Shown one piece after another: positions 324-58,863 of a DNA stretch of 64,000 nucleotides. The stretch is from Paragordius varius (Eukaryota; Animalia; Nematomorpha): NCBI GenBank assembly GCA_964247055.1, contig OZ176058.1, forward strand, positions 186,001 to 250,000, read 5' to 3'. The notes under the pieces are model-generated. The model worked only from the letters and a program-made list of their open reading frames with translations, was not told where the DNA came from and did not search any database. A program made the translations under genes and the position numbers. Every line of letters begins with the position of its first letter. Position 1 is the first letter of the stretch.

Positions 324-3300
324 AGGAAGTACCCATTCCACCTGTATAATTGTAAATGAAAAAGGAAATCTTTTAATTGAAGAACCCGTTATTGGGCCCC
401 CCATTAATCCTTGGGTATAATTTAGTTTTAAAAAATAATTTTTTATAAAAATTAAATTTTTTTATAAAAATTAATAATTTTTTAAAATAAAAAATTAAAT
501 TTTTAAAAAATTAATAATTTTTTTAACATATTTTTTATATATATTATATTATAAAAATATTAAATTTTTTAAAAAAAATTTATAAAAATATATTAAATTT
601 TTAAAAATATTATTTTTTTAAATTTAATATAGTTTTTGAAAAAATTATAAATTTCATAAAAAAATTTTAAAAAAAATATTTTTTTAAAAAAAAAAAAATT
701 ATAAAAAATTAATATATTAAAATATTAATATTATAAAATAAATATAAAATTAGTATATAAAATTATTAAATATAAAATAATTTTAAATTTATTATATTTT
801 TAAAATATTTTGAATAAAAATAATTATGTTGAAAATATAAAATATTAATAAAAAATATTTTTTTTAATTATAATTTTTTTTAAAAAATTTTAAAATTTTT
901 TTTATATATTAATTTTTTTTATACTTTATATAATTTTTTTTTAAATATAATTGATTTTTTAAATATTTTGATTAAAAATAATTAATAAATATATTTTTTT
1001 ATTTTTTAAAAATCTAATAAGTATAATAATTTTTTGATGTTTTTGGAACTAAATTAAATATGAAAAAATAATTTAAAAAAAATTGATAATATTAAATTAA
1101 TTGAAAATTTTAAAAATTAAAAAATATTAACAATTTAAATCTAAAATTAAAAATGTTTTATAAAGAATAAAATAAAAATATTTTGAATAAGAATTAAAAT
1201 AATTTTTAAAATGTTCTTAAAAAAAATAATTAATAAAAATATATTATTTTTTAACTAATTCTATTTTAATTTTTTAGGAATAAAATATTTTTAATTATAT
1301 ATTAAATTATAAATTATTTTAACATTAATTTGTGTTTATTTATTTTTTTATTATTTATATATTTTTTTCTTTTTTTTTTATTTCTCTAAAGTTTTTTAAA
1401 TTTTTTTATTTAATATTTATTTACTTTTTTTGTTTTTTTTAGTTAAATTTTTTTTAAATTCATTCTTTATTTTTTAATAAATTTTAATTTTTTTTTAATT
1501 TATTTATATAAAATTAAATATAGTTATATTTTTAAATTATATATTTATAAAAATAATTTTATTTTATAAATTTTATAAAAATAATTTTTTTTTATAAAAA
1601 ATTAAATTTAAAATATTAATATGTTTAAATTATATTATATAATTTAAAAATTATAATTAATATTTTTAATTTTTTTTTATTTTTTTTTATTTTTTTAGTT
1701 ATATCCAAATGAAGAATTATGGGCAAATCAAGTGGAAAATATTTTAAAAGAAGCTTTAAAACAATTTATTTTACAAAATAAAAAAAGTAATTTTAATTTA
1801 TTTTTTAATTTTTTTAAAAATATTTAATAAAATAAAAATATTATTTTTTTAAGATTTATAATTATTTATTATAATATTTGGTAAAGTTTTATTGTTTATA
1901 AATTAAATTTTATAATATTAAAATTCATATTTTATTTAAAATTTATAATTATTTATTATATATTTTTGGATAAAAGTATTTATAATATTAAAATAATTTA
2001 TAAATTTTATTTTATTCTAAATTAATAATTATTTATTATAATTTTTGTAAAAAAAAATTTTTTTATATTAATCTTATATAATATTTTTTAAAAAATTATT
2101 TTTTTAATATTATTTATTTATGAAGTTTATATTTTTTATTTTTTTTAAAATAATATTTTTTAAAAAATTATTTTTAATATTTTTTATTTAAGTTATTATT
2201 TTAATTTTTTTAAATATTTTAATATTTTTTAAATAAAAGTAATTTTAATATATAAAAAAAGTTTTTAAATTTTTTTAATTTTAAAATAATGTTTTTCATT
2301 TTATACATCAATATTATTCGAGAATTATTAATTTTTAATTTTTATTGTAAAAGATTTAATTATTTCTTTATTAATTTTTAAAAAAAGTAAATTAAAGGTT
2401 TTATTAAAATTTTTTTTAAAATATATAAATTTTTTTTTTAAATTAATTTTTATAAATAATTTTATAATAATTTTATTAATTTTTTTAATTTTTATTAATA
2501 ATATTCTAGAAAATTCTGAAAAATTGCCCATTTTAGATGCCCTGGTATAACTAAATTTAATTTTTAATAAAAAAAATTTTTTCTTTTTTTTAATATTAAT
2601 TTCATATATTGAATATTTATTTTTTAATTTTATTTTTTTAATATTAATTTATTTATATATAAAAACTTATTTTTTGAAATTAATTTTATTATAAAAAATT
2701 AATTTTAATTTGAATAATTTCGGTTTTATAAATATATTAAAAAATTGATTTTAAATAATTATTGCTTTTAAAATAATAATTAAAATTTAATTAAATTATG
2801 CTTCTAAGAAAATTTTTTTTAAAAAATTAAAGAAAAATAAATATTTATATTATATATTTATCATTTATTTTTAAAATTTAATTTAAAAATAAATAATAAT
2901 TTTATTATATTTTTTTAATTTATCAAAAAATTATATTTAAAAAAAAATTAATTAATTATTTATATTTTTCTTTAAAAAAATTTAATTAATTTAAAATTTA
3001 ATTATATATTTGTTATGCATATTATATTTTTAATTTTAAATAATTAAAAAAATATAATTTTATAAAAAATATTATTTAAAAAAAAAAAAATTATATATTT
3101 AAATTATTATAATTTTAAAAAATTATTTAAATTTTTTTTTAATTTTATTTTATTTTTAGGGAATAAGTACAAGTGGATCAGAACAGGCAGAACACGTGAT
3201 CAGATTGAGTCAGCTGCTCGAGTCTAGACTCGGACCCAATCAAGTAAATACTCGATTTTTAATTTTTTTGAAAAAAAAATTTTTTTTAATAAAAAAATTA

Positions 3301-6300
3301 ATAATTAAATTAATATTTTTAATTATATTTTTGATATTTTTTGATAATATAAATATTTTTGATTTTTTTATTTAATAAATTTTTTTTTAAATATTTTAGA
3401 ATTTTTTTGATTTTTATTAAATAAAATAATTAAATTCTTAAAAATAAGTTTTTTAAATAAAAAATGAATTATTTAAATAAAATTAATAAATTTTAAACGA
3501 ATTTTATATAAGTTAAGTAAAACTTTTGAAAACAAAATTAAAATAAAATTTATATTATAGAAAAAAAAAATAAAAATGTTAAAAAAATATTTTAATTAAG
3601 TTTTTAAAAAAAATATATAATTAAAATCATAAAAAATAATAAAAATTTTGATTTATTTTTTTTAAAAAAATAAATATAAAATATTTTTTGAAACCACAAA
3701 ATATTTATAATTATTGAAATAATATATTACTTTTTTTATCTTGAATAAAAATAATTTTCAAATTTTAAATTTTAAAATATTTTAAAATTGTCTAAATAAA
3801 TTATTATTTTAATTTTCTATTTAAATAATTATTCTAAAAATATTTTAATAATTTATTTTAGAAAGATCAGTCTTTAGTACTTACACAAAAACTGGTGATT
3901 AACCACGACACAGATGGCGCAATTTTTACCGGTTCTAATAAAGGTGCTTAACAAATATAATTTAACATTTTTTAATATTTTTTTATATACCTTTTTATTT
4001 AATATTTTGTATATTTTTTTAGATTTTTAAATTATTTATTTTTTTAATTTATAAATTATTTATTTTAATTTTTCAAATTTTTTATATTTTATATTATTAA
4101 TTTTACTAATGTAATTTTTGTTTTTACATTTTTCTAAATAATAATTAAATTATAAATATTTTTAATGGTATAAATAAAATTTAAAAATCTAATTTAAAAT
4201 TTTTAAAATATTAAAAAAAAATTATATTTTAATAAATAAATTAAATAATAATAAATCTTATTTTTAAATAAAATTTAATTATCTTTTATTTAAATAATTT
4301 AATTTATATCCTTTTAAAAAATATCAGGTGGTATAGTATTGATTGCAGGGACAGGATCAGCTGCTCAGCTGTTTTATCCACCCGTGTCAATGAATGAATG
4401 CAAATCATGTGATAATGTCATCGATGCCATAAGGACAGAAAAACAGCTGTTAAGCATGTGTGATAAATTCCGTATTGGGGGTTGGGGTTATGCCCTTGGT
4501 GATGAAGGATCAGGTGAGTTTTATAAATTTTTAATAAATAAATTTTTTTTTTAAAAAAAAATATTTTCTAAAAAAATATTATTTTTATTTATTTGGAAAT
4601 AAAAATTTCAAAATAAATTATTAATTATTAAAATAATTAGTAATTGAAAAAATAAATTTAAAATTAATTATTTATTACTTTTTAAATATTTATTTTCGAT
4701 TTTATCATTGATAAATATTTTTTTTTGATATTAAAATTTTTAAACAATTAATTTTAACTTTTTTAAAAATGGAAAAAATTATTATTTAAAAAATATTATT
4801 ATTATTTATTTGGAAAAAAATATTATTTTTAGAAATTTGGAAAATACTTATTTATTAAAAAATAATATAAATTAAAATGAATTGACTTTTACTTTAAATT
4901 CACCCTAAAATAAAATAAATTTTTTTTAAGATTAGAAATTATTTATATTTTTATATATTTTTAAAAAATAAAAATTTTGTTTTAATAAAAATATAATTAT
5001 AAACTATGCCATAAAAATATATTTCAGATTAATATTGAGTTATATTAGTTCAAAAACACATTTTATATTTTTAGGGTGAAATTCGAATTGTAAATGGAAA
5101 TTGATTTTCAAAAATAAAATAAAAATATTATTGAAATTATTTTTTAAAAAATAATTTATTAAAAAATAAATTTAAAATTAAATAATCATTTTTTTAACAT
5201 TTATTTCTTTTTAAAATTTTATTTTTTATTCGAAAATCATATATTTTTTTTAAGTGAAAAATACAGTTTTAAAATATATATGTTTTTTAATTTTAATACA
5301 TTTATATATTATTGATTTAATAATCGTTAAAATATAATAATAAATAGCTTTTTATTAATTTTTAATAATTTTTATTTTATTTTTTTTTAAAATTTAATTT
5401 TAAAATTTTTTTTTATTTTTTTCATAGCTTATCACATTGCCTGGTCTGCTATAAAATACGTTTATGATTCTGAAGATGGCCTCCTTTTAACTTCACCGCA
5501 ATCAGCTGATTTAGATACGTCATATGTTAAGGAGCGCATATATACTTATTTTAAGGTAAAATATTATAAAATTTTTATACAGCTGTTTTATTTAATTTTT
5601 AGGAAATAATACTTTGTTAAATTGTAATATTTCGAATTATCAGCTGTTTTTATTTAATTTTTTAGTTTTATATAATTAAATATATTTATTAGTTTTATAT
5701 AATTAAATATATTATGAAATTAATTGTTTTTACTTATTTGTGATTAACATTAATTATTTAAAATTATTAATTATTCCTTTTATTTTATATTTGCAGTTTA
5801 AAACAATGAGTTATATTTAGAAAAGTGAAATTTAAAACAATAGTATGGTTGGTTTGTCTTTAAGAAAAAAAATTTGTCTTTTTTTATTTGTCCGTATATT
5901 TTCAATTTTTACTGTAAAATTGTATGATCAGCTGTTTATAAACTCAGCTGTTTTTGAATGAATGAATGTTTAATTTAGATGAATCATATGGATGGCACAT
6001 TGGCATATTTTAAATTTTGGATGTTTTTAACAATAAATGTAGATGCTTTTATAAAAAAAATTAGTTTTCCAATATATTAAATTAAAATCACCTGATTTTT
6101 TGTTTTTTAAAAAAACAAATTAGTTAAGTTTTTAATTTTATAATTACATATGATTTGGATGAAATAAAAAACTTAATTCCAGATGTATATTTTTGGATTA
6201 AACTTTACAAATTTATATTTTACTGATTTTAAATTTTGCAACTCAGCTGTTTTATGAATGAATGAATGTTTATTTTAGATGAATTATATGGATGGCACAT

Positions 6301-6665
6301 TGGCATATTTTATAAAAAGTTTGGATGTTTTTAACAATAAATGTAGATGCTTTTATAAAAAAATTTAGTTTTCCAATATATTTAATTAAAATCACCTGAT
6401 TTTTTCGTTTTTTCAAAAATAAATAGGCTTTTTACTTTTTTTGAAAAAACACATATGATTTGGATGAAATAATTAACTTAATTCCTTGAATTATAATAAT
6501 AATGTAAATATATATTTTACTGATTTTAAATTTTGCAACTCAGCTGTTTAATGAATAAATGAATGATTTCTTTAGATGAATCATATGGACGACATCTTGC
6601 CATACTTTTTATTATAATATGATTTTACTAAATCTTTGGCTATAAATAACTGTGTTTTAACATTA

Positions 6666-6697
<32 letters not shown>

Positions 6698-9125
6698 TTA
6701 CTTGGTAAAATTTAAAAAATATTTAATTAAAAAAATCAGCTGTTTATAACTCAGCTGTTTTTAAATGAATCAATGTTTATTTTAGATGATTTATATGGAG
6801 GATATATTGCCATACTTTTTTTTATAATATGATTTTACTAAATCTTTGGCTATAAATAACTCTTTTTAAAATTTATTATATACATTTTATTACTTGGTAA
6901 AATTTGGAATATATTTAATTTAAAAAATCAGCTGTTTATATCAAACTCAGCTGTTTTTGAATATGAATGCATGTTTATTTTAGATGAATCATATGGACGA
7001 TATGTTGCCATACTTTTTCTTATAATATGATTATACTAAAGCTTTTGGCTATAAATAACTCTTTTTTATAACATAATTTATTATATATATTTTTACTTGA
7101 TAAAATTTGGAAAATATTTAATTTAAATGATTAATCAGCTGTTTATATAAAACTCAGCTGTTTTATGAATGAATGTTTATTTTAGATGAATTATATGGAC
7201 TATATATCAGCAGTTTGATAAACCTCTATAAATAACTCTTTTTTAAACATTATTAATCATATATATATTTTTACTTGGTAAAATTTGGAAAATATTTAAT
7301 TTAAATGATTAATCAGCTGTTTATATAAAACTCAGCTGTTTTATGAATGAATGTTTATTTTAGATGAATTATATGGACTATATATCAGCAGTTTGATAAA
7401 CCTCTATAAATAACTCTTTTTTAAACATTATTAATTATATATATATATATATATATATTTACATGGTAAAATTTGAGAAATCTTAAATTTAAATAATCAG
7501 CTGTTTAATCACTATCAGCTGTTTTTACATGAAATGTTTATTTTAGATGAATCATATGGGACGATATTTTGCCATACTTATTATAATATTTTACTAAACC
7601 TTTTGGCTAAAAATAACTGTTTTTTAAACATTATTGATTGTATATATTTTTACTTGATAAAATTTGGAAAATATTTAATTTAAATGATTAATCAGCTGTT
7701 TATATAAAACTCAGCTGTTTTATGAATGAATGTTTATTTTAGATGAATCATATGGACGATATCTTGCCATACTTAAATAACTCTTTTTAAAATTTATTAT
7801 ATATATTTTATTACTTGATAAAATTTGTAAAATCTTTAATTTAAAAAATCAGCTGTTTAATCACTACCAGCTGTTTTTGAATGAATGAATGTTTATTTTA
7901 GATGAATTATATGGACTATATATCAGCAGTTTGATAAACCTTTGGCTATAAATAACTGTTTTTTAACATTATTAATTATATATATATTTTTACTTGATAA
8001 AATTTGGAAAATATTTAATGATTAATCAGCTGTTTATATAAAACTCAGCTGTTTTATGAATGTATTTTTATTTTAGATGATTTATATGGTAGATATCTTG
8101 CTATACTTTTTTTATAATATGATTTTACTAAACCTTTGGCTATAAATAACTGTTTTTTAAACATTATTAATTATATATATATATTTTTAATTGGTAAAAT
8201 TAAATTATTTAATTTAAAAATCAGATGTTTATAACTCAGCTGTTTTATGAATGAATGAATGTTTATTTTAGATGAATCATATGGACGACATCTTGCCGTA
8301 CTTTTATCAGCAGTTTGATAAACCTTTCATTGCCAAATTTTGTATGGAAATTGTTGAAGGTTTTTAATTTTTAAATTATTTTAAATAAAATTATTATTAT
8401 TTTTATTTTAAAAAAAATTAAAAAAAAAATTTTTTTAAATTAATTTTTTATATTTATTTGATTTTATTATATTTAATAATTTTTGATGTTTTTTTATATT
8501 TTTCATTTTTTTAAAATTGAATTTTTTTAGTAAAATTTTTTTTACTTATATAAAAAATAGGTTTGACTTTTTTATTTAAATTAATTATTATTTAAATTTT
8601 TTTTTATTTTTTATGAATATTATAAATAATGAAAATTAAGAAAATTATATGATATTTTTTATAAAGTTATTTTTAAAAAAATTTAATAAAATTTTTATAA
8701 CCTGAAATAATAATTATTTTTGTATAACAAAACAATAATCTGAAATTTTCATTATTTATTATTCGAATTTTATTTTATATTTTATAATTTTTTGTATTTA
8801 ATTATTTTGTTTTATTCTATAAAAATTAATTTAATTTTGTATTTTACTGTATTAAAAAGGCGCGCAAAAAGGCGACAGCTTATGCATTAAACTCCTGGAA
8901 ACAGCTGGTTTCGATTTGGGAAGGCATTTGGTGGCGCTTTTATCAAAGGCTGATTTAGTATAAAATTTTAATATTTTTATAATATTATTCAATTAAAAAG
9001 TAATTGAAGATTATTCTTAAAAATATTTATATATTTTTTTAAGATTTAAATTATTTTTTATATTTAGAAATGATTAAAATTTCTTTTTTTAAATTATTAT
9101 AATATTTTAGATAATTTTGTTAATA

Positions 9126-9162
<37 letters not shown>

Positions 9163-12100
9163 AATAATTGTTTTTTATATTTTTAGAAAATATTATTTTT
9201 TAAAGCAATTCAAAACATTTGTTAAATAAATATATATATATATATATAATAACTTAATATTAAATAAAAAATTTTAGTTAAACTTTATTTTTAATTTAAT
9301 TTAGACCAAATTTTTAAAAAATTAATATTAATTTTAATTTTTTTATAAAATATTATTTTTTAGAGAAATTTAAAATATCTATCAAAAAATTTTAATTTAA
9401 ATTTATTTTTTATTAATAATTTTATTTAAAAAATAAATTTTTGATTTAAAAATGTTTAATTAAAAAATTATGAATTTTGTTTTAAAAAAGACTAATTTTT
9501 AAAAGCCATTTTAAAATATTAAAAAAAAATTAGTTTTTTATATTGATTATTAAATTTTTATTTAGGATTATTTTAAAATAATTTATTTTGTTTAGAAAAA
9601 ATACTAATATATATAAAAAATTATTTAATAATTTTATTTTTAATATAAATATTAATTTTTAAAATATTTTATTTAAATATTTTATTAATTATTTTTATTT
9701 TTAATTTTTTAGAGCAAATTTAATGGTAGTATTCAAGTGGTTTGCGTGGGCGCCGTTTTTAAAAGTTGGAAATTCTTAAGAAATGGTATTTTTTTAAATT
9801 TTTATAATTTTTAAAAAAAAATTTAAAAAAAAAATTTATTAAAAACAGCTGTTTGATATATTTTTCTAATTTTTATTAACTTTTCAAAAAAAATTATTTA
9901 AAAGTTGGAAATTCCTTAAAAATGGTATTTTAAATTTTTATTAAAAAAAATTAATAAAAAATTAAAATTAAATAAAAACAGCTGTGCTTAAATATATTAA
10001 AAATTTTAATTTTTTTAATTTATTTAAAAAAAATATTTATTAAAAAGTTGGAAATTACTAAGAAATTGTATTTTTTTTATTTTTTTAAATTTTTAAATAA
10101 AATAATTTAAAAAAAATAAAATTTATTAAAAACAGCTGTGCTTAAATATATTAAAAATTTTAATTTTTTTAATTTATTTTAATTTAAATTATTTATTAAT
10201 AAAATTTATAAATAATTTGTTTGAATTTATTTTATCAATCATTTTTATTTAATATAAATTAGAATTTATTAAAAACAACTGTGCTTAAATATATTTAAAA
10301 AAATAAAATTTATTAAAAACAGCTGTGCTTAAATATTTTTTATATATAATAAAAATCATAATCTAATATATTTTTGTTTTTTTATCAATCTTTGTTTAAA
10401 AATATTATATATTAAAATAAAATATTTAAGTAATTTTTTTGAATTTATTTTAATGTTTTTTAAATCCTTTTTAAAAAAATAAAATTTATTAAAAACAGCT
10501 GTGCTCAAATATTTTTTTAAAAATTAATAAATAATTTGTATGAATTTATTTTATCAGTCACTTTTTTAAAAGATATGCAAAAAAATTATTAATAAAATTA
10601 AAAAATAATTTTTTTGAATTCATTTAAAAAAAATATAAATTTACCATGATTAATAAGTAATTATTTTTTAGTATAAATTTCAAAATAATGAAAAAATCAT
10701 TAGAAATTTCAGTTTATTAAAAAATTTAAAATAAATAATTTATAAAAAAAATGTAAAATATATTTCACAAAATATTTTTTCAGTTGACTAAAAAAATTAT
10801 TATAACAAAAAACAGCTGATTTTTATAATTTATTTCCAAAACAGTTGTTTGCTAAATATAAAATTAAAACAGCTGGTCTATAAATAAAATATTATTTTAA
10901 TAAACAGCTATTTGCTAAATTTTTACTAAAACAGCTGATCACGATTTTTTCAAACTATTCATTTTTATATAAATAATATTTTTATTTTACAGTTAAACTA
11001 AATTTTTACGGACAAAACGTGGAAAACTATAAAGTAGGATATATTAAGGATTAAAAAAGTAAGATTTTTATAAAAAAAACAAATTTTGTCTTTATATTTT
11101 TACGACGTTTTGTCCGTATAATTTCAATTTTTATTGTAAATTAATATTTTTTTATATCTTAAAATATTGAATTTATTATGTGAAAAATAACTAACAATTT
11201 TATATATTCTAAAATAGCTCTAAAAGTGAATTTTCTTAGAAATGGTAAATTTTTTTTTATAAAAATCTCATTAAAATGTATTTGGTTTTAAAATATAGAA
11301 TATTTTCTTAATTTTTAATTTATATATATTTTTATTATATTTGCAGGTTTTTTTGATTGCCTACGACTTCGCTTTGACATTAAAACATGTGATACATCCC
11401 AAAATATTTCTTCTTTAGAAAAGTCTGCAAAACTTCTAGAAAATTCTTCAAAAACTATTAGTTTAGAACCAAAAAATAGTACAGAAACTTTAAATTTTAC
11501 TAAAAATCCTTTAGAAACCTCGATTTTTCCAGAAAATACTTCTTCTATAGATAAGTCTCTAAAACTTTTAGAAAATTCTTCAAAAACTTTAAATTTAGAA
11601 CCAAAAAATTGTATAAAAGCTTTAAATTTAACACAAAATAGCTCAGAAACTATCATCAATTCTAATAATCTAGAAAATTCTCTGCAAGTCAACAATCCCT
11701 CTTTAAACCAACAAAAAACAGAAAATTTTCAAGATTTAAATGAAAAAATTGTAGGAATTAGTTTAGAAAACAGTTCAGAAAATTCCGATAAAAACTCTCA
11801 AAATTTTGAACAAAAACCCTTAGAAAAAAATTCTATAGAAATTCCAAAATTTCAAAATCCTAAAAGTTTAAAAAGTTCTGAAAATTCTATAGAAATTCCA
11901 AATTTTCAAGATTTAAGCCAAAAAAATACCCTAGAAACCTCTAAAATTACACAAAAATCCGAAAAAAAATCTTTAGAAAAGCAAAATCCTAAAAATTCTG
12001 AAAAAACCTCAGAAAATTGTTTAGAAATTCCAAATTCTGAAAATTTTGAAGAAAAACCCGAAAAAAATTTAGAAAATTTTGAAGATTTAAGTCAAACTAC

Positions 12101-12383
12101 TCTAAACAGTTCAGAAATCTTTAAAATACAAGATTCTGATAAAAACTGTTCGTTTAATACTAAAAATTCTGAAAAAACCTCAGAAAATTGTTTAGAAAAG
12201 CAAAATCCTAAAAATTTAGAAAGTTCTGAATTCAAAATATGCTTGGGTCATTTAAAACAAACAGCTGCTTTTGGGGCGTCTTATATTGCGGCCTTTACCC
12301 TTTTAAAGGGCCTTAAAATACCCCTCGAATATGAAAATATGTTGGATACCTTAGAAGAATTCTATTGTTTTACTGTGAAATAA
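324..12383 (+). CDS. NAGK: N-acetyl-D-glucosamine kinase, 5'-partial (first exon lies upstream of the window), 11 visible exons
   Basis: Exons 324-414, 1699-1786, 2510-2544, 3160-3243, 3862-3943, 4328-4513, 5428-5555, 8272-8359, 8860-8957, 9713-9785, 11347-12383 join in frame with GT-AG introns. Translation has the NAGK motif order: GSTHST, GISTSG, HDTDGAI, GGIVLIAGTGS, GGWGYALGDEGSAYHIA, AQKGD, LGRHLVA, VCVGAVFKSW, LGHLKQTAAFGAS. Stop TAA at 12381-12383. Confidence 0.93.
4880..5100. mobile_element. Degenerate MITE family B copy in NAGK intron
   Basis: aaattcaccct ... agggtgaaattcgaattgtaaatgg with the family interior; left end eroded. Confidence 0.7.
5920..8271 (+). repeat. Acceptor-side echo array of NAGK exon 8272-8359 (about 11 copies)
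   Basis: ctcagctgtttt..atgaatgtttattttag|atgaatcatatggac repeated every 155-300 bp. Confidence 0.92.
10988..11138. mobile_element. Short, internally deleted MITE family A copy in NAGK intron
   Basis: tacagt...tacggacaaaacg on the left; cgttttgtccgtataatttcaattttattgta on the right. Confidence 0.75.
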
Positions 12384-13082
12384 ATCGAAATTTATTAAAT
12401 TTTTGATAAATTTAGAAAAATTTTTTAAATAATTTTAAGGGAAATGAAAAAGAGTTTATAAAAAATTATAAAATGCCTAAATAATATTTTAAGAAAATTC
12501 CGAAAGAATTTTATGTATTTTGCTGAAAAAATTGACATTATTCCATAAATTTTGCAATAAATTTGTTCATTACTTTTTGAAATAAATCGAAATTTATTAA
12601 ATTTTTGATAAATTTTAATAATTTTAAGAGAGTTTAGAAGTTTATAAATGATACCTTAAGGGAATTTTGAAGGAATTTTGAAGAAATTTTATGAAATTTC
12701 GAAAGAATTTGCCAAAAAAGGAAAAAATTGACATTATTACATAAAAATTTGCAATAAATTTGTTGAATTCATTTTTTAGTGAAATAAATCGAAATTTATT
12801 AAATTTTTGATAAATTTTAATAATTTTAAGAGAGTTTAGAAGTTTATAAATGATATTTTAAGGGAATTTTGAAGGAATTTTACGAATTTTATATATTTTG
12901 CTAAAAAAATGGAAAAAATTGACATTATTACATAAAAATTTGCAATAAATTTGTTGAATTCATTACTTTTTATATATACCCTTTGATTATGAAAATATGT
13001 TGGATATATATTACAAAATTTTTACTATATTGTAAAATGAAATAAATTGAAATATATTAAATTTTTGATAAATTTCAAAAAA

Positions 13083-13331
13083 TACAGTAAAAATTAAAAA
13101 AGACCAAAACTTTTTATCTAAAAGACAAGCCCATATACATTTTCAAACCTAAATTAATCCTAATAAAACTATTTAATAATAAGCCAAATATATATAATTA
13201 ATTATTTTACCAATATATACATCTCAGTTTTATACTATTAAGATTTAAAAAGTATGGTTGGTGGTCTTTTAGAAAAAAAAATGTTTGTCTTTATATTTTG
13301 TTTTGTCCGTATAAATTTAATTTTTACTGTA
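13083..13331. mobile_element. MITE family A copy (TA|CAGT..ACTG|TA; long TIR containing TATACGGACAAAACG, AAAGACAAA and AAAAGACAACCCCATAC)
   Basis: Inverted termini tacagtaaaaatt ... aatttttactgta. CAGT ends with TA duplication are typical of Tc1/mariner/pogo-derived MITEs. Confidence 0.8.
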
Positions 13332-13429
13332 AATATTATAATTTAGCAAAATCATGCGTGAATTAACGAAATAAATTGCAATAAATTATATATATTTAAC
13401 TCTGTAATTTTTAAGCATCTATATTGAAC

Positions 13430-14211
13430 ATACAGAAAAAAATTGAAATTATATGGAAAAAACGTGGTATTAAAATAAAGACAAATAATTTTTTAAATCT
13501 TGATTTTTGAGATTTAAATTGATTAATTAATTAATTATGTATTTTACCATTATAATAAATATTTTATAAAAAAATAAAATTTTAAAAAGTATGGGGTGGT
13601 TTTTTGAAAAAAAAATTGTGTTTATATTGTTACGTTTTGTCCGGATAATATAACTTTTTTTTGTACATTTTAGAATAATTGAATTTAAAATAGCTCTGAT
13701 ATATAAAACTACCTACCCTCTAAAGAAAATTAAATTTTAAATTGTTTTTATAAAAAATTCGAGAAAAGCTAAAAATACTAAAAAGTTAAATGTAATTGTA
13801 ACTATAATTAGATTATAGCAAAAATTGAAAATATACGGACAAAACTTAGAATATAAAGACAAATATTTTTTTTTCTAAAAGACAACCCCATTTAAATTAT
13901 GATTTTTTTAAATATAACTCATATTGTTTTAAAATGCAAATTATATAAAATAGAGATGTATATTGGTAACATAATCATTTATATATTTTAGTAAATAATT
14001 GTATTATATTATTCCGTTTTGTCGAATTTTAATATTTGCATATATTATTCAATTTTTAACAATTCTTTATCTATAAAAAAGTAATAGGACATCTATTTAA
14101 GAATAAGTTTAATCTCATTTTTAAATATGTACTTTGAAAGATTATGCAAAATATTAAGGGTCAAATTTTCGCTACAGATATCACACCAAGCTTACACAGT
14201 AAGAATTGATG

Positions 14212-14247
<36 letters not shown>

Positions 14248-15130
14248 GGACAAAACGTAAAAATATTAAAAATTAGATGTAAATTTATAAAGAGTTATAG
14301 TAAAAATTGATATTTTATGCGGACAAAACGTAAAAATATAAAAAAAATTTCAAAAGACCACCCCATACTTTAAAAAATTTTATTATTTTAAAAAATAAAT
14401 CATTGTTTTGAACTCTAAAGTAGGAAATAGAGATGTAAATTCGTAAATCAATCAACATTTTATATAACAATAAAAAATTATATGATTTTTATAGGAAAAA
14501 TTAAGAATTAAAACGTGTGGTTTTCTTGTCTTTGTAAAAAAATTGTTAATTTTAATTTTTACCATACTTAAATAAAACTCTTTGAATAATATGGTAAAGT
14601 GTGAAATATCGATATATTTTACTAACACAATCAATTATGTATTTTACGATTAAAATCGAATGATTTCATAGAAAAAATTATGGTTTTAAAAAGTATGGGG
14701 TTGTCTTTTAGATAAAAATTTATAAGTATCTTTATATTTTTACGTTTTTTTTCATACTATAATTTCAACTTTGATTGTAAATAGTCTTATATTTTAATCT
14801 AATATTATATTTGTTAATTTCCATATATTTTGGCGGCCTATTTTTAAATAGACTGTAAAATTGAAATTATACGGACAAAACTTGTAAATATATAAAGACA
14901 AATATTTTTATCTAAAAAAAACTAACCCATACTTTTTAAAACCTAAATGTTTCCCATATAAGCTATTTATGAACTTAAGATTGTAAAATAAAGAATTCAT
15001 TGTGTTATTATTATATAAACTATTTCAAAAGTGTGATTTATATTAAATATTTAAAACGTATGTTTTTGAAAAAAAATTTTCTCTTTATAATTTTACGTTT
15101 TTCCCTTACGTATAATTCGCTCAATTTTTA
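13430..15130. mobile_element. Cluster of complete and partial family A copies between the convergent NAGK and RAD23 3' ends
   Basis: Repeated ggacaaaac / gttttgtcc and ccccatac / gtatgggg TIR fragments near 13610-13650, 13830-13890, 14245, 14320-14370, 14690-14760 and 14870-14935. Confidence 0.7.
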
Positions 15131-15865
15131 CTTAAAAAAAGTTTAAAAAATATAAAATATAATAAAAATCGTGTACATTTATTATTCACATCATAATATA
15201 GTTATACAAAGATATATATATATATATATATTAGCATTTATCACATATTAGTTTATTATAAAAAAATAAAATAAAAAATAAAAAACGAAAAAAAAAATGA
15301 AAAATATAAAAAATTTTATATTTAAAAAATAAAAAAACATAATTATATATATATATATATATATTAATTAAAATCGGCAAAAATAATAAATTTATAAGAA
15401 AAAAATAAAATATAAATTAAAAATAACAAATAAAAAATTAAACTTAAGAATTTTAACAAAAACAATAATTTTAATTTTTTAATAAATAACTTTTAAGAGC
15501 TAAAAAAACATTCCATTTTTTTAAATTAAAAATTTTATGTATATTAAATAAAAAACAAAAATCAAAAATTTTTGAATTAATAATCTAAAGAGATATTTTA
15601 AATTTATAAAAAAATTATTTTTTTTACCGACTAAAAAAATTAAAATATTTTTATTAACTTTTTAAAATCCAATTTTTTAAATTGAAAAACAAATTAATAA
15701 TTTTTCAAATTATTTTAATCAAAAACCAAAAAAATCAAAAAAAATCCAATTTTTAATAATTTTACAAAATATCAAATATTTAAAATATTATTTTTTATTC
15801 AATATCCAAATATTTTATAATTTTTTTAAAAAATAAAAAAAGAATTTTAAAATTTTTTAAAAATT

Positions 15866-18800
15866 TTATTCTTCATCAAAATTATTTTGTGTGAGCAAAA
15901 AATTTGCGGCGGCATTTTCATCTTTCTCACAAGCAAAATAAGCTTGAACGACAAGAGCTTCAGGAAATCCCATGGCTTTTAACTAAAAATATAAAAATAA
16001 AAAAAAATTAAAAAATTAAAAAAAAAATATTTTTAATTTTTTTAAATATAATTATTTAAAAATATTCATTTATTTGAAAATATATATATTTAAAATATTA
16101 ATAAAATTTAAAATATAAATAAGTTTAAATATATTAAATTTCAAAAAAATAATTTTTTTAAATTATTTAGAATTATATTTAAAAATGAAAAAATTAAATT
16201 CGAAAAAAATTTAAACTAAAAATAAATATTAAAAATATAATATATTAAATATCAAAAAAAAAATTTATAATAAAAAAATATTTTAAAAAATAGGCTTGGA
16301 CTACAAGAGCTTCGGGAAATCCCATGGCCTTTAACTAAAAAAAATTAAAAAAATAATAAAATTTAAAAAAAATATTTTTTATAAAAGCCTAATTATATAA
16401 TATTTTAAATTTTTTTTACTAATTTAAAAAATAAATTTTTTAAAATATATATAGAATATTTTAATTTTTTATAAAAATTAATAAAAAAAAATTAAAAATT
16501 TCATATAATCTTGTTAAAATAAATCTAAAAAATATTAGATATTTATTTTTAAATATAATTTAAAATATTAAGAATAGATTAAAAAAATAAGTAATTATTT
16601 TAGAAAATATAACACAATTTTTAATATTTATATTTTTAAATATTTATGTTTAATGAAATATTTATAAATAAAATATTATTTTAAATTTTAATTTTTAAAA
16701 ATTAAAATAAAAAATTTAAATTTAAATTTGAAATATTTAATTAAAAATGTTTATTTTAAAAAAAATTATTAATTTTCAAATGCTAAAATTAAAAAAAAAT
16801 GAAAAATTTACTTAAAAATATATATAGTATTTCAAAAATTTTAACTGTTTCTTTAAAAATATGATAATTTAAAAAGAAATTATTTAAAATATTTAAATAA
16901 AAATATTTAATATTTTTAATTATTAAAAATAAATATTAAAATAAATTAATTATTTTAAAAAATGTAATAATTTTTGAATATTTTTTTTAAAAAAATTTTT
17001 ATTTAATATTTTAAATAATTTAATAAAAATATTAAAATTTAAAATATTTAATTAAAAATATTTATTTTAATAATTTAATATTTTTAATTTAATTTAAAAA
17101 ATAATTTTAAATTAAATTAAAAAAATATTAATTTAAAAATTATTTTAAATTAAAATTAAATTTATTAAACTCTTTCAATAGCTTCCTTTTCTTGTACAGT
17201 TATTCGAATTGTGTTGGGGGGTGCAACTTGGGTATTTCCCAACCCTGTTTTAAAATAAAAATTAAAAAAAAATATTTTAAAATATATAAATATATTAATA
17301 TATTAAAAGATCAAAAAATACAATATAAAAAAATATCAATAATTTAAAAATATTAATATGAATTATATTATTCGAAAAATATATGAATATTTAAATAAAA
17401 TATTTACAAAATTGTTATTAATAAATCGAGAAAATTAAATTTTTATAAAATTAGATTTATATAATTTGTAAAATATTAATTAAAAAAAATTAATCAAAAA
17501 ATAATTGAAATTAACAAAAATAAATATATTAATATTTTAATTAATTAACTTTTAATATATATAATTGTTAAATATATTAAAAATATTAAAATTAACAAAA
17601 ATAAATAACATATATTTATAATTAATTAAATTTTAAATATTATATCTTTAAAAAAAATTTATATCATAATAAAAAATAATTTAAATTATATTAATTTTTA
17701 AAATTAATTAAATTTTAAAAAAAATATTAAAAATTATATTATTCCAAAAATATATTAATATATTAATAAAAATATAAATATATAAAATTAAAAAAAAGAG
17801 ATATATATATAAAAATATTAATATTAATAATAAATAAAAAAATAAAATATTTTAAAGAATTTTCTTTCTAAAAATTATATATAATTATTAAATAAATTAG
17901 TTTATATATGATTTTTAAAATATTAAATAAAAAATATAAGATATATTACTATAGTAAAATAATCAAAAAAAATATTTTTAAAAAATTTGAATATATTAAA
18001 ATAATTTAAAATTAAAGATAAAAATTAAATAAATTACTAAAAAAATGAAAATAATATATTATTGAAAATGATTATTTAAAAATAATTATATAAAAAAAAA
18101 TATTAAATATTTTTAAAAAATTAAAATAGTTTAAAAACCAGCTGATTGGGGTGTCACGTGTCCAGGATCGGAAGAATCGGTGCCACTTTCGATTGGTTCA
18201 TTCAACATTTGAATAAATCTCTCTTGATTTTCTGTAATTCTCTGTACACAAAAAATATCAAAAAAAATTTAAATGAAAAATATACAATTTCAAAACGATT
18301 ATTAATATAGTTATAATATACACTCTTAGCTTTTCAAAAAACAATTTATTAAAATATTATCAAAGTTGATTTTTTTAATTTTATTATTACTAAAACAGCT
18401 GTTTATTATAAAGTAATTCAGGGGTCCGAGCGCTCAGCTGTTAGCTGTCCAAAATTTATATTGAAAAACTTTTAAAGGAGTAAAATATATCATATGGTTT
18501 AGATTCTCAATATATTTAAATTTGAGGTTTAACAAAAAACAGCTGTTGTCCTTACTTGAAGTAGTTCAGGGTTCTGAGCGCCCAACTGTTGAATAAACAG
18601 TTGTGAAAAATATAAATATTGAAAAACTTTTAAAAATAGTTATTATCAAATTATATTATGTTTATTTTTCATATTCTCTTTATATATATAATATGCTGTA
18701 CTTGAGCGCCCAGTTGTTGAATAAACAGCTGTAAGAAATTTTTAATAAAAAACTTTAAAAATTAAAATACCTCCCAATATAATCGGTAATAATATCAATT

Positions 18801-21800
18801 TTATTTACAAATTATACAGCTGTTTGAGTTTTGACAATATGTTAATGTATAAATACAACAGTTTTATTTCCCTCTCTAATAATGCTTTTAGAAACAGCTG
18901 TTTATCACAAATATTTGAGTATTCTAAACCCCAAAACCAATTAATATAATATAAATTCGAAATTATATGAATATTAAATATTAAAATATTTATAAAACAG
19001 CTGTTGACCTTACTTGAGGTTGTGGAATAAACAGAAAATAAATTTTATATATATTTTTTTTAAAAAATGGATTTTCACAAAAAACAGCTGTTTTGACCTT
19101 ACTTGAAGTAATTCGGGGTTCTGAGCGCCCAGCTGTTGAATAAACAGCTGTAGCAGATTTGGATTGCTTTGAACCAATTCTCGCATTTGGCGGAATTGAG
19201 GGAGTTGCCGTAAAAAACCCAAAGGATCTACAACATATGGTCGAAAACATATGATTGGAAACATATGTTATGATTAATGCATATGTTAATATGATTAAAA
19301 ATACGGTTAAACCATATGTTAAACATATGATTGGGAACATGTGTTTATTAGAAACAAAAAGATTTTTAGTGAATTAAACTGCCTTAAGATCAATTATTGG
19401 ATTGTTCAAAAAAAACATATGATTAATATATAACGTATTATAAAATAGGCAGGTTTGTCATCTTTATTTAATTTGGTGTAAAAAGAAATATGAACAATTT
19501 AAATATTTTTAGTCTAGAGAGAAAATAAACACGTGATTCAAACATACATTCATTCATTCAGAAGTCCTTTCAGTAATTTTGATTCAATTCCAACATATTT
19601 AATTTAAAAAAATAATAAACATTTAATAAGTTATTTTAAAAAATGTTATAAATAAACAAATTGAATTAATAATATAAATTCAGTGTTTAATTTTTTAAAC
19701 AGCTGATTTAGGTAATTTAATTAAACAGATTAAAAATAAATTATTTTTTAATGTAAATCAGCTGTTTTATTTTTTAAAAAAACAGCTGATTTAAAGAAAA
19801 AAATGTATAAACCACTTTTAATATCATCTACTGGCTTTTTCCAAATTAATTTAATAATGGTTATTTATTTAATAAACATACAAAATATATTTTATTATAT
19901 ATAAGCTATTTTTTTAATATCAGCTGATTTAAAAAAAACAACTTTCCATCTTATCTATATCATTAAACTTAACAAAGGTTATGTAATTATTAAACATTCA
20001 AAATATTTTTTAAATAAATAATCAATTATTTTTTAAATTATATATCATAAACAGCTGTTTTCTATTTTTTTGATAAACAGCTGATTTATAAATATATAAC
20101 AACTTTCAATATCATCTACTGGTTCTTTAATATTAATATAACAAAACCTATATAATTTTATAAAACATTAAAAAATCAATTGATTCAAAGATAAATTCAA
20201 ATAAAATCAGCTGTTTAACATAAAATCAGCTTTGATTCAAAAATATAATTTTAAACTCTTACAGATTAATAAAAAATCAATTATTTTATAAAAATATCAG
20301 CTGTTTTTTTATTTTTAAAGATAATCAGTTGATTTATTTAAAATTTTAAACCACTTTCTATATCAGCTGTTTTATCTCAAAAATCAGCTGATTTAAAAAA
20401 CGATTTTAAAAAAACTCAAACCAGTTTCAATATCATCTACTGGTTCTTTAAAATTTATTTAATAATGGTTATTTAATTTTAAAACATTATCAGATTAATG
20501 TAAAAATCAATTATTTTTTCAATGTAAGTCAGCCGTTTTTATTTTTTAGATCAGCTGATTTAAACGATTTTTTAAAATTTTAAACCAGTTTCTACATCAT
20601 CTACTGGATCTTTAAAAATTTAACAGATTAATGAAAAAATTATTTTTAAATGTAAATCAGCTGTTTTTATTTTTTTAAAAAATGAGCTGATTTAAGTAAT
20701 TTAAAATACATTACCAGATTAATAAAAAATAAAGTATTTTTAAATAAAAATCAACAGTTTTTATTTTTTTAATATAATCAGCTGTTTTAAATTTTTGAAA
20801 AAATCAGCTGATTTTTTAAATTTTTCAAACCAGTTTCTACATCATCTGGTTCTTTAAAATTAATTTAATAATTATATTATAACCAACATTCAAAATATTT
20901 TTAATAATCAGCTGTTTTTAATTTTTGAAAAAAACAGCTGATAAATGAATTTTCCAAACCAGTTTCTACATCATCTACTGTCTCGTCTTCATGTTCATCC
21001 CCAGAAGCTATTTGAGATGTGGGTTCGCCTTCTTGGCCTTCAGTCGTCAGCTGTTGTGATTGCATATCAGCTGATGTCTGAGTCGCCGCCAAAGAGTCCA
21101 CGAGGGATGGTGGAATTCCCTACGTAAAAATTTAATTTTAATTTGTATTTATTATATTAGATTTCATAATTAAATGAATATTAAACAATTTTATATATAT
21201 ATAATAAAAAAAATATTCAAAAATGAATTTTATTTTGTATTTGTTGTCAAACGACAAATTAAAGCAAATCAGCTGATGTTTATATCGTTCCACGAAGGAT
21301 GGTGGAATTTCCTGTTAAAAAGATTTTTTACTTTAGTAAAGAATAATTGATTTCAATTTATTTAAAAAATTAAAGCAAATCAGCTGATGTCTGAGTCGCC
21401 GCCAAAGATTCCACGAGGGATGGTGGAATTCCCTAAGTAAAAATTTAAAAAATTTGATAAATTAAATTTTTTTAAAGTATTCGTGTTATATACCATTTAC
21501 AATTCAAATTCACCCTTGAACAATTCAAATTCACCCTCAAATAAATAACATGTTTTTTAAGATTAAACCAATATTTTTATATATTTTAAAAAATAAAAAT
21601 TTTGTTTTAAATTAAAATAATACTGAAAAAAGAAACTACAACATAAATATATATTTCATATTAAAAAAGAGTTAGTTCAAAAATACATAATTTATTTTTA
21701 GGGTGAATTTGAATTGTAAATGGTATATAATATAACTTTAAACAATGAAAATCAGCTGATTTCTAAGTCCGTAAATTCTTAAAAAGAATTATTAAAATAA

Positions 21801-24800: not shown

Positions 24801-25465
24801 TAATAAATTTAAAACTTTAAAATATATAATTAATTAAAAAAAAAGGTTCAATTTCATAAAATTTATTTATTATAAATATTCATTTTCAATTCAATTCAAA
24901 TTCAAACTTTTTCTGATCAGCTGTTTCAGTGTCAGCTGTTTGTTGCACTTTTTTGGGTTCGGTCCCGACAAGATCAGCTGATGTTGTTTTTTCAGCAGAC
25001 GAAATTATTTTTGGCGGTTTACTAACTATGATTACTAGGAAACCATTTTCATCAATTTTATATTCTTCAAGAGTGACGTCATCTTTTAAAACTTTACCTG
25101 TTTAAAAAAAATATTTTTTATAAAAAAAATATTTTGCAAATAATTTAAATATAATTTTTATATTTAATTATTTAAATTTATATATATATAAATATATATA
25201 CATATAATAATAAAAAAATTAATAAAAATATTTTTGAAAAATCAAAAAAAATTTAAAAAAATTTTTAAATAATTTAAATTTTAAATTAAAAATTATTTAA
25301 AATTATAAATTAATAAATATATATAAAAAATAAATAAAATAAATTTTCATCAATTTTATATTCTTCAAGAGTGACGTCATCTTTCAAAACTTTACCTGTA
25401 AAAATTTTTTTAAAATAAAATAAAAAAATTTTTTTTAAAAATTAAAATATATAATTTTTATATAA

Positions 25466-25499
<34 letters not shown>

Positions 25500-25853: not shown

Positions 25854-25891
<38 letters not shown>

Positions 25892-26433: not shown

Positions 26434-26473
<40 letters not shown>

Positions 26474-28138: not shown

Positions 28139-28185
<47 letters not shown>

Positions 28186-34274: not shown

Positions 34275-34545
34275 TAACATTTACTATTCAAATTCACCCC
34301 CTTGAACAATTCATCCAAAAATTAAATTAAAAATTACTTATATTTTAATAGGTATTTTTGAAAAATAAAATTTTTCGTTTAAATTAAAAATTATATACTT
34401 GAAAAAATAATAAACTATGCGCCATATAGATATATTTCATATAAAATATAAGTTATATTAGTTCCCTAAAAACATATAATTTATTTTTAGGGTGAAATCA
34501 AATTGTTTAAGGGAGAATTTGAATTGTTTAAGGGTGAATTTATTA
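34275..34545. mobile_element. Degenerate MITE family B copy
   Basis: ttcaaattcacccccttgaacaattc on the left; several agggtgaa..ttgaattg units on the right; family interior present. Confidence 0.7.
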
Positions 34546-35582
34546 TTGAAATTTATATTTTAAAAATTAAATCAAACTAAAAAACTTAATAATTTTAAAT
34601 TTATTAATTTTTTTTAAATCCAATTTATTTGTGTGCACAAATGTAACATAAAATGATTGCCAATATCAATATAAAGTAAGTATGCGCAGGTGTGAGTACA
34701 AAATTATCATAAAATCATAAAAACAGGTGTGTTAAATATAAAAATCAGCTGTTTAATATAAAATTATAAATTTCAATTGTAAATTAAATTAAGATGAATT
34801 ATAATTGAGAGTAGGTTTTATATAAATAAAACATTTTTGAATCAATTGTTTTTTTCAATATAAAATTTAAATTATAAATTCAATTAAATATATATATACA
34901 TGTTTTTAATTAAATCAGCTGTTTTATATAAAAATCATAATAAAAAGCATAATAAATTATAAATTTCCATTGTATATTAAATTAAGATATAATTGAGAAC
35001 CTATTTTATATAAATAAAACATTTTTGAATCAAATTTTCGTATGTAAAATTTAAATTATAAATTTATGATTTATAATGTTTTTTATTAAATCAGCTGGTT
35101 TACAGATCATCAGGTCAAAAACATGTGTTAAATAAAAAATCAGCTGTGTTTTACAAAAGCATAAAAAAATTTATATAAAATATTTTTATTATAAATAATA
35201 ATATAATAGGATAACCGGTTTTTTAAAAAACATATTTCATAAAGTATTTTATTGTGTAATTAATGTTAACATTGGATTTATTAAATTAAATCAGCTGGTT
35301 ATAATTAATTAAATTATGGAAACATATTTTGATATTGTATCAGCTGTTTAATCTATACTATTGTATAAAATATCAATTTTTTTTAATATTTAGAATTAAT
35401 ATTTGTATAACCGGATTAAAGAAGAAAAACATTTTTTAAATAATTTTTTGATATTAAAAATAAAAACATATGGTTGTATAGCACAGCTGTTTTTACGTTA
35501 TAAATAAAATATAATTTATAATAATTTTTTAGTAAAATAAATTAAAGATAACATTCCAATATTTATATAATATATATATATA

Positions 35583-35627
<45 letters not shown>

Positions 35628-35661
35628 TTAAATAATTTTTTAATAAAATATAAAAAAAAAA

Positions 35662-57306
<21,645 letters not shown>

Positions 57307-58863
57307 TAATTTGCTGACATTTTCTATAAAATAAAAACGCTTGAATTTTGACACAAATGCAAATTAGTCTTTTTCAAGATTTGTGTGGATATGTTTTGAT
57401 GTTTTCACTTTAGTTTTCTGTCAAAAAGTATAAAATATAAAAAAACTTGATTAATTAGTTAGATATGTTTCTAAACTTTTTGTTTTTCTGAGTATTTTTT
57501 ATTTCTTTAGGCGATCTTTGATGACATAAAATTATAATAGAAAAAATACGTCGATTCAAATAATGAATGTAGATGAAACAGTTGATATTTAAAAATTATT
57601 TTGTTGGAAATATTAAAATTTATTAACTTTTAGGATGTTTTTATAAGATTTATAATAAATTGACCTAAAAAATTGCTAAAGGCTTAAAATATTTCTCTTG
57701 TGGGTTTTTTTAAAGATTTCGGACTCTCTTAAATATACCCTTAAATATTTAATGGTTTATTACAATAAATATTGAACTATACGGACAAAACGCAAAAATA
57801 TAAAGACAAACATTTGTTATCGAAAAGACTTTTATACTTTTTAAAACATTAACTTTGTCTCATATTATATATACATTTGTAAAATATTGATTTGATTGTA
57901 TAAGTATTCAATTTCTATTATTTAAAACTATGAGTAATATTGAAATAAATCAAGATTTGAATAATAAGGTTCTTTTATTATCTGATAGGGCATTAAGGTA
58001 GTAACTTTGTAGATTTAAAAGTGAGCTACGCCTAAAATTTTTGCCCCCCCCCTTCCCCCAATAAAATCAGCTGTTTTTTGTTAAAATAATTGCAATTTTT
58101 TTAGATTTGCAATAATATCTCATATATATATATATATATGCTAGATTATTCCATCAAAATTATATTTTTGAAACAATGTTTAATCGATTAACAGGAGAAA
58201 AATACTTTATTTTTTTCAGATAGAATTATTTATTATTTATAGCTTGATTTTTTATTCGCTTAAAACCTAAATTAAAATAGTTGTTTGTTTTAGAATAATG
58301 AAATTATACCATGGACTAAATCTAAATATAAAGACAAAAAACTTTTTTTAAAAACAACCATTTTTTTAATCCTTAATTAGTCCTATAAAAAAACATTTAA
58401 TTACAATCGTAAAATACATAATTGATTGTGTTACCAATTTAAATTTCTTTATTGTTTGAAGTTTAAGATAACGAGTAATGATAAAAAACATGGTTTAAAA
58501 AATATGGTTTTCTTTTAGAAAAAAATATTGGTCCTTATTTTTTTTACGTTTTTTCCGTATAATATTAAATTTTACACTAAAAACAACTAAATTTTAAACA
58601 AAATGGATCATAAAAAATCTTGATTTCATAGACGAACAGATATTCCACTTAAACTAGAGGTAATGAAAATGTTTGCCCCAAATTATATATAAATTTATTA
58701 TATTTTTTCGATAAAAACTTTACTATAAAAGTCGAAAATTAAAATATATATTTTTTTTCTATTTGTACGCATTTCAGCTTAATTTTACTAAAATTCTAAA
58801 ATACAATGCATAATTCTCTCAATTTTTAATAAAATGTTTAAAAATGTTTTTTATATATTTTCA

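Follow-up and report, generated by a model that had tools for sequence, protein, structure and literature searches.

The stretch of DNA analyzed in this study comprises 64,000 nucleotides from Paragordius varius (contig OZ176058.1, positions 186,001 to 250,000) and is referred to as the window in the following. It has a G+C content of only 15.7% and carries three genes, namely an N-acetylglucosamine kinase-like gene (NAGK; 289-12380, plus strand), RAD23 (15869-28681, minus strand) and an alanine aminotransferase gene (ALT; 35665-55434, minus strand). The exons of these genes, and the tandem copies of exon edges that fill some of their introns, are densely occupied by the palindromic hexamer CAGCTG, which forms the core of a longer site with the consensus AAWCAGCTGWTT. 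The distribution, the form and the possible meaning of this site are the subject of the present work.

RAD23 is recognized by its Pfam domains (ubiquitin, UBA, XPC-binding, UBA). The gene called GPT in an earlier note on this DNA is addressed here as alanine aminotransferase, based on tblastn matches of the homologs P0010 and P0002, which cover 11 exons, and on the Pfam family Aminotran_1_2. For NAGK, the best match in the PDB is human NAGK (2CH5/2CH6), and this match is weak (E = 0.04). The NAGK exon cores are located on the plus strand at 325-414, 3160-3246, 4327-4515, 5427-5558, 8272-8361, 8856-8957, 9725-9787 and 12246-12365. The exon at 3160-3246 is short and easily missed by a 30-codon filter for open reading frames; it is a G+C-rich sequence (GISTSGSEQAEHVIRLSQLLESRLGPNQ) amid a 3.9-kb stretch of 7% G+C, flanked by an AG acceptor and a GTAAAT donor, and its reading frame is open. 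The conserved last NAGK exon is entered in frame from a low-complexity open frame (11319-12380, plus strand, 354 codons) that contains tandem units of 132 nt and 48 nt and has a G+C content of 26%, and on the opposite strand of this region there is an overlapping open frame of 137 codons. Coding DNA has 42% G+C and a moderate AT bias at synonymous sites, and the adjoining introns have 3.5-9% G+C. CpG is not depleted in any of this DNA (observed/expected 0.83-1.4). A search for relatives with a RAD23 exon as query matched only two marine-metagenome eukaryote fragments, and a search with the NAGK C-terminus gave zero matches.

Abundance and distribution of CAGCTG

There are 172 copies of CAGCTG in the window, spanning 3211-58073 without assignment to a strand, with the outermost sites at 3211 and 58068. 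In 100 dinucleotide-preserving shuffles of the window, the hexamer occurred 0.54 times on average and never more than twice, which confirms the earlier claim of well over 100 copies against a chance expectation below one per window. The count is 398 times the expectation from base composition, which makes CAGCTG the most over-represented hexamer save for a few near-pure G/C hexamers with 4-8 occurrences. Its single-base neighbors occur 0-13 times each. Of the AGCT tetramers in the window, 74% lie within CAGCTG, and for CAGC this share is 90%. The excess is no assembly artifact, since several of the sites are spanned, with zero differences, by 151-nt contigs that stem from the runs X5 and X6 of two other studies. 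Both runs are filed under other organism labels and contain this locus as identical low-depth contigs.

The sites are distributed very unevenly. Genic DNA (44.7 kb, 14.9% G+C) contains 163 of them, 38 in NAGK, 40 in RAD23 and 85 in ALT, and intergenic DNA (19.3 kb, 17.5% G+C) only nine. Eight of these nine follow the ALT stop codon within 1.6 kb and are part of a loose repeat of about 175-200 bp (34062-35489, minus strand), and this stretch may be a 3' untranslated region or read-through DNA. As the earlier note had observed, the motif is nearly absent from intergenic DNA rich in miniature inverted-repeat transposable elements (MITEs), with one site in about 17.7 kb: there are zero sites in 12381-15868 and in 28682-34061 (about 20% G+C, no strand assigned), and a single one, at 58068, in 55435-64000. 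This far-intergenic site abuts a C-rich run (GCCCCCCCCCTTCCCCC; 58040-58075) about 2.6 kb upstream of the first recognized ALT exon. It may mark an unrecognized 5' exon or a promoter; the first recognized ALT exon is without a start codon. The MITE with GGGTGAATTTGAATTG in its terminal repeats, found at 21490-21730, 31020-31345, 34300-34540 and 62380-62900, contains no CAGCTG. Its summed contig depth reaches about 37,000 in run X5 versus tens elsewhere, and it is therefore a very high-copy element.

Within the genes, the exon cores contain 28 sites in 3,441 nt (8.1 per kb), and one further site lies in the short NAGK exon 3160-3246. Eleven introns of 10-25% G+C, which are full of tandem exon-edge copies (termed echoes below), hold 131 sites in 22.8 kb (about 5.7 per kb), while 14 low-G+C introns of the same genes (3.5-9% G+C, about 18.3 kb), which we call desert introns, hold two. 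Within genes, the distribution is thus sharply bimodal. RAD23 intron 1 (25099-28600, minus strand), for instance, is a desert intron of 6.9% G+C with zero sites, and all RAD23 sites fall within 18139-24980, which leaves both intron 1 and the 3' portion of the gene free of them. In NAGK intron 1, the only apparent CAGCTG is lost to the intron, because position 3211 falls within exon 3160-3246.

The motif therefore tracks exons and exon-edge-derived DNA and not transcription or G+C content as such, since the desert introns are transcribed and nearly empty, and intergenic DNA of equal or higher G+C content is essentially empty as well. The enrichment in gene bodies reported by the earlier note stands for exons and echo-filled introns, whereas it does not extend to the desert introns of the same genes; the proposed tie to exons is borne out by the densities just given. 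There is no sign of a signal in a fixed position relative to splice sites, and this candidate was rejected: of the 28 acceptors only three, and of the 28 donors eight, lie within 100 nt of a CAGCTG, at varied distances, and sites inside exons show no preference for exon edges.

The extended site and its imprint on coding sequence

Sequence information extends four to five bases to each side of the CAGCTG core. The central part of the consensus, AWCAGCTGWT (W being A or T), is fitted by 106 of the 172 sites, and the flank AW or WT is present in 80% of the half-sites versus 37% of the background. The sites had been described as usually extended palindromes, but this is not the case, since only 43 of the 172 are perfect palindromes over 10 bp. 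The left and the right W vary independently of each other (T.T 58, A.T 35, T.A 32, A.A 29). As complementary combinations (67) do not dominate over non-complementary ones (87), self-complementarity of the nucleic acid is not what matters. Independent half-sites of this kind would fit the pattern expected of a protein dimer on duplex DNA. There is also no consistent sense-strand bias of the motif across the one plus-strand and the two minus-strand genes.

The core has the form of an E-box, as it was called before, that is, the type of site bound by basic helix-loop-helix (bHLH) proteins. It combines the sequence CANNTG and a center typical of this family with two-fold symmetric half-sites and a flank preference. 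One-base variants of CAGCTG are enriched 5.3-fold if they preserve CA..TG and 1.9-fold if they disrupt it. Among the other E-boxes in the window, CACGTG is enriched 32-fold, CACCTG/CAGGTG 22-fold and the remainder 1-4-fold, and this order is the hierarchy that a reader of E-boxes would be expected to leave behind. AWCAGCTGWT presumably matches the consensus of AP-4, although no confirmation of this was found in the literature searched.

The imprint on the coding sequences is strong. When synonymous codons were shuffled with the proteins kept (1,000 trials), 4.9 ± 1.9 coding sites were expected, with a maximum of 12, and shuffling the codon order gave 1.7 ± 1.2, against 28 observed. The latter number is close to the earlier estimate of about 32 sites in about 5 kb of coding sequence. 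Duplication does not explain the excess either. We merged sites by the likeness of their 60 flanking bases, for which the 99.9th percentile of random pairs lies at 63%, and obtained 91 clusters at a likeness of at least 60% and 138 clusters at 70%. The null reading, in which duplication and codon usage account for the count, is refuted by these two analyses: the earlier note had considered that the excess might vanish once both were controlled, and it persists in at least 91 sequence contexts and in the codon shuffles alike.

The exonic sites occur in reading frames 0, 1 and 2 in the proportion 7/21/0. Frame 0 encodes Gln-Leu and frame 1 encodes [S/T/P]-Ala-[D/V/A/G], and the unused frame 2 would encode Ser-Cys or a stop. 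Seven of the eight Gln-Leu dipeptides are encoded by CAG-CTG, although the preferred Gln codon of these genes is otherwise CAA, and only 16 of their 99 Leu codons are CTG. The site at 3211 in the short NAGK exon is likewise read as Gln-Leu (SQLL). The motif is present in 21 of the 25 [STPA]-A-[DEVAG] tripeptides, and SAD (8 versus 0.36 expected) and TAD (5 versus 0.29 expected) are in an excess of about 20-fold. For the three genes of the window, the proposed bias of codon and amino-acid choice, and the excess of SAD, TAD and QL over codon expectation, are thereby substantiated.

According to alignments with homologs, most exonic sites are ungapped substitutions at variable positions, in variable N-termini and in linkers. 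Examples in ALT are FPAD versus FPSD in homolog P0010 and DPAV versus DAEV in homolog P0002. Two overlapping NAGK sites come after the conserved GTGS (AAQL versus NCRL in human NAGK), and a third one lies within a 24-residue insertion in exon 2. Both here and at FPAD, the form of a conserved motif is changed so that it suits the site. A few ALT sites are found in or beside insertions of 4-6 residues, and the 12-13-nt string AAATCAGCTGAT(C), translated as KSAD, recurs in three ALT exons. The notion that the sites often lie in lineage-specific insertions thus applies to a few of them, in or beside small insertions, while most are substitutions, so that it finds weak support.

Exon-edge copies in introns

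Most sites of the window lie in introns filled with echoes. The NAGK intron preceding exon 8272-8361 contains an array of 12 units of 178-195 bp that are copies of the acceptor side of this exon (5929-8242, plus strand), with 21 sites, mostly in pairs 15-19 nt apart. All 12 units have the second CAGCTG unchanged, and 9 of 10 retain the first. The invariant blocks of the array are CAGCTG and the acceptor. A further NAGK array of about 154-bp units, copied from the donor side of exon 9725-9787 (9846-10501, plus strand), has a lone CAGCTG in every unit, between flanks of 3-7% G+C. In RAD23, the exon encoding the XPC-binding domain, with two Gln-Leu sites, is accompanied by donor-side copies (18396-19150, minus strand), in which decayed versions of the motif read CAGTTG or CAACTG. 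Another RAD23 array comprises units of about 130 bp from the donor side of exon 20952-21119 (19700-20940, minus strand; 16 sites). It is the only family whose paired sites form extended inverted repeats of 13-15 bp.

The ALT gene, on the minus strand, is especially rich in such copies. The intron at 36862-39107 contains acceptor-side copies of exon 36708-36821, with many isolated sites in flanks of 3-10% G+C. Donor-side copies of exon 46024-46107 (45093-45998) have a pair of sites 13 nt apart in each copy, and in a 193-bp array of acceptor-side copies of exon 47908-48006 (47997-48961) the pairs are 21 nt apart and bracket the acceptor AG. Exon 53490-53594, which starts with KSAD, has upstream copies as well (53585-55000). 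The densest intron, with 30 sites (10.3 per kb), is that at 49118-50980, where donor-side copies of exon 50931-51083 contain CACGTG boxes along with the CAGCTG of the exon, and more CAGCTG lies in the spacers. In the exon itself, three ACGTG/CACGTG boxes occur within 45 nt and adjoin its CAGCTG, and each of its downstream copies (49218-50660) starts at an ACGTG/CACGTG box.

Independent arrays of unlike sequence, including those at 9758-10501 and 34746-35489, all have units of about 130-195 bp. Because unrelated arrays have similar unit lengths, the distances from one CAGCTG to another have maxima at about 175, 365, 560 and 725 bp, a nucleosome-sized period.

The exon-edge duplication neither requires nor generates the motif, as acceptor-side copies of RAD23 exon 2 (24907-25098; copies at 25100-27110), located in an intron of 7% G+C, contain zero CAGCTG, unlike all other echo arrays of the window. 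The arrays mostly amplify sites that are present in or beside the source exon. Many intronic sites stand isolated in flanks of 3-10% G+C, and the motif is kept more faithfully than its surroundings. We compared the window with itself after masking the motif, so that the alignments were not seeded on CAGCTG. In 181 of 262 non-exon paralog comparisons (69%), which are not independent of each other, CAGCTG was kept in register, compared with 12% expected from the other bases of the same alignments (G/C 65% identical, A/T 82%), which is a large effect. In about 17 of the remaining comparisons, CAGCTG is kept one or two bases off register, 20 show one-base variants (mostly CAGATG), 26 are gapped and about 18 have other mismatched hexamers; alignment through A/T runs is unreliable. 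Clean one-base changes do not predominate, so that the sites may have arisen by insertion as well as by substitution.

Interpretation and comparison with known systems

The reading that we tentatively favor is that AWCAGCTGWT is an actively maintained, exon-tied site on double-stranded DNA for a symmetric protein, most likely a bHLH protein of the AP-4/MyoD type. A dimer site on duplex DNA is suggested by the symmetric unit with its independently varying half-sites and by the hierarchy of E-boxes, and also by the fact that the motif has no strand bias and is retained beyond expectation in non-coding copies. The restriction of the motif to exons and exon-flanking DNA suggests in addition a role in chromatin or transcription that is linked to exons. 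In such a model, a sequence-specific protein dimer, by the form of the site most likely a bHLH protein of the class preferring CAGCTG, would read AWCAGCTGWT symmetrically, and the site would be under active maintenance in exons and directly beside them. The intronic copies would come mainly from tandem duplication of exon edges, by which the sites were carried along, and the sites in these copies would then outlive the sequence around them. The bound site might act as an exon-associated chromatin or transcription signal, for instance by slowing the polymerase or by positioning nucleosomes for exon recognition. Of the two levels considered in the earlier note, DNA and RNA, the absence of a sense bias, the independence of the two W positions and the lack of an exon-edge preference favor the former and speak against the latter.

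One could go further and assume an exon-marking DNA code, in which AWCAGCTGWT recurs every 100-150 bp in and beside exons and is read via chromatin or polymerase pausing, so that exons are told from AT-rich introns and from decoy splice-site copies. Proteins genome-wide would then be forced to carry SAD, TAD and QL. We regard this larger scheme as rather unlikely.

Several observations weigh against the favored reading of a maintained protein-binding site. Promoters and enhancers are where sites for transcription factors usually cluster, whereas hardly any CAGCTG is found here in DNA near promoters, in first introns or between genes. The low-complexity NAGK frame 11319-12380 contains one CAGCTG only, in its conserved part. 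In echo DNA that is derived from the exons themselves, the retention of the motif (93%) does not differ significantly from that of neighboring G/C positions (89%; p = 0.18), and in this small sample 15 of 21 exonic sites persist, while the other 6 have decayed, mostly to CAGTTG and also to CAACTG, and no site has been gained. The mutual dependence of the 262 paralog comparisons mentioned above has to be considered as well. Runs X8 and X10, which carry the label of the same species and are guessed to be RNA, have no coverage of the RAD23 region (18000-23999); together with the labels of X5 and X6, this pattern suggests mixed or mislabelled samples, or a mixture of host and parasite. Moreover, hundreds of thousands of weak sites would be hard to keep by selection, which favors a drive.

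A molecular drive would mean that the sites have no individual function and that repair, conversion or recombination favors the strand carrying AWCAGCTGWT, comparable to the uptake sequences of Neisseria and Haemophilus. The motif would build up where exchange is frequent, as in exons and tandem copies, and where protein function is tolerant. This would account for the sheer number of sites and for their survival in apparently useless intronic copies, and the peptide and frame bias at variable protein positions parallels that of bacterial uptake sequences. However, the gains give no support, since none face the six losses in the exon-derived echoes, and the RAD23 array at 25100-27110 is free of sites. 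A correction of T:G mismatches toward the motif, of the very-short-patch type, should have depleted the transition neighbors CAGTTG and CAACTG, and as these are not depleted, this variant was rejected. We know of no such drive mechanism in animals and consider the explanation unlikely. The probability of an RNA-level element appears to us low as well. CAGCUG might serve as a splicing enhancer or silencer that chooses the real splice sites among the decoys, or the copies might pair and loop out the intron. The sites do lie in exons and exon-flanking introns and travel with copies of splice sites, some pairs bracket or adjoin splice sites, as at ALT exon 47908-48006, and the pairs of the RAD23 array fold into hairpins of 13-15 bp with z-scores of -5 to -7. 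Yet the flanks are symmetric without preference for the sense strand, the W bases are not complementary within the site or, outside one family, between paired sites (4 of 29 pairs), the distances to splice sites and the positions within exons are as indifferent as described above, and many exons between desert introns have no site nearby. A hairpin or cruciform as the general principle was rejected, since there are 29 intervals between paired sites 13-26 nt apart and extended inverted repeats in the RAD23 array only. Rfam families had zero matches in the window, and the nematode piRNA upstream (Ruby-type) motif CTGTTTCA, which occurs once per strand in the window, was dismissed as well.

Two further explanations concern the DNA itself. 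A methyltransferase for CAGCTG, which is the PvuII sequence and contains two adjacent symmetric CHG sites, could mark exon DNA, and the modified site would then be shielded from AT-biased decay. A perfect 6-bp palindrome that takes up most AGCT and CAGC of the window and persists against strong AT pressure would suit such an enzyme. However, a specificity of 10-12 bp with a degenerate W is unlike that of known 6-bp methyltransferases, methylated cytosines usually mutate faster and not slower, and CpG is not depleted (observed/expected 0.83-1.2), so that there is no sign of a 5-methylcytosine system. We therefore judge a modification target to be very unlikely. It is even harder to believe that the sites are scars or tiny mobile elements, that is, excision footprints (e.g., of Tc1-like elements with CAG...CTG ends), short palindromic insertions or duplication breakpoints. 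Such an origin could be read from the few sites in or beside small insertions in NAGK exon 2 and ALT, from the recurrent KSAD string and from the intron-side ends of echo homology, which lie near a site in 29% of cases versus 13% in controls. This last excess probably arises because the conserved motif prolongs the alignments. Conservation ends 4-5 nt past the core, without target-site duplications or TA flanks. Most exonic sites align without gaps to homologs, and the abundant MITE of the window has different ends. Where paralogs lack the site, gaps or unalignable sequence are commoner than clean one-base changes, so that these comparisons do not favor substitution over insertion. Duplication breakpoints in particular were rejected, since inside exons the echo homology ends within 6 nt of a site in only 5 of 50 cases, versus 14% for random exon positions, and a larger mobile element was discarded because conservation stops a few bases from the core.

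If the site is functional as a protein-binding mark, it would be the first case known to us in which one DNA word of the transcription-factor type labels the exons of an animal genome-wide and visibly rewrites its proteins, and it would bear on exon recognition where base composition guides little. If, on the other hand, a drive is responsible, this would be a eukaryotic equivalent of the bacterial uptake sequences and a hint at an unknown process of repair or conversion that has a sequence bias. In either case, the sites are discrete, abundant and easily mutated synonymously, which offers a direct experimental handle. The same genome has tandem exon-edge copies and micro-introns, so that all three oddities can be studied jointly. 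Gene finders as well as codon and selection analyses of this genome must take the motif into account.

The literature searched contained nothing that links CAGCTG with Nematomorpha, that deals with such a motif in AT-rich introns or that gives the extended consensus. The sequence as such is a known E-box, and it is its distribution, its density and the strength of its coding imprint that are without counterpart in that literature. With the E-boxes of AP-4 (TFAP4), MyoD and ASCL-type bHLH proteins it has in common the CANNTG core, the preference for CAGCTG, the symmetry, a flank preference up to about 10 bp and the enrichment of other E-boxes. Known E-box clusters, however, lie in promoters and enhancers and have a far lower density, whereas here 6-8 sites per kb are found in coding exons and exon-derived repeats, and promoter-side and intergenic DNA lacks them. 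Exonic transcription-factor sites, the so-called duons, likewise overlay a DNA-binding motif on coding sequence and bias codons and amino acids. Their effects are subtle and spread over many factors, while here one motif encodes nearly all Gln-Leu pairs and raises SAD and TAD to the excess described above.

There are also parallels to signatures that are not tied to a classical transcription factor. The periodic A/T clusters (PATCs) in germline genes of C. elegans are confined to genes, largely intronic and proposed to act on chromatin without encoding anything. However, they consist of A/T runs phased at 10 bp in introns, outside of coding sequence and without effect on proteins, in contrast to the discrete G+C-rich word described here. 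The G+C clusters of yeast mitochondria and the palindromic elements of Rickettsia are also G+C-rich palindromes in AT-rich genomes that sometimes lie in frame, but they are 30-150 bp long with a recognizable body, whereas just 10-12 bp are conserved here. The bacterial uptake signal sequences (USS), DNA uptake sequences (DUS) and Chi sites share with CAGCTG that a word of 9-12 nt occurs in genes hundreds-fold over expectation, in favored frames and encoding peptides at tolerant positions, and they are plausibly upheld by drive rather than by a function of each site. We know of no uptake or recombination machinery that could drive such a word here. In contrast to these bacterial sequences, the word described in this study belongs to an animal nuclear genome, is palindromic without orientation bias, and is restricted to exons and their copies instead of being spread genome-wide.

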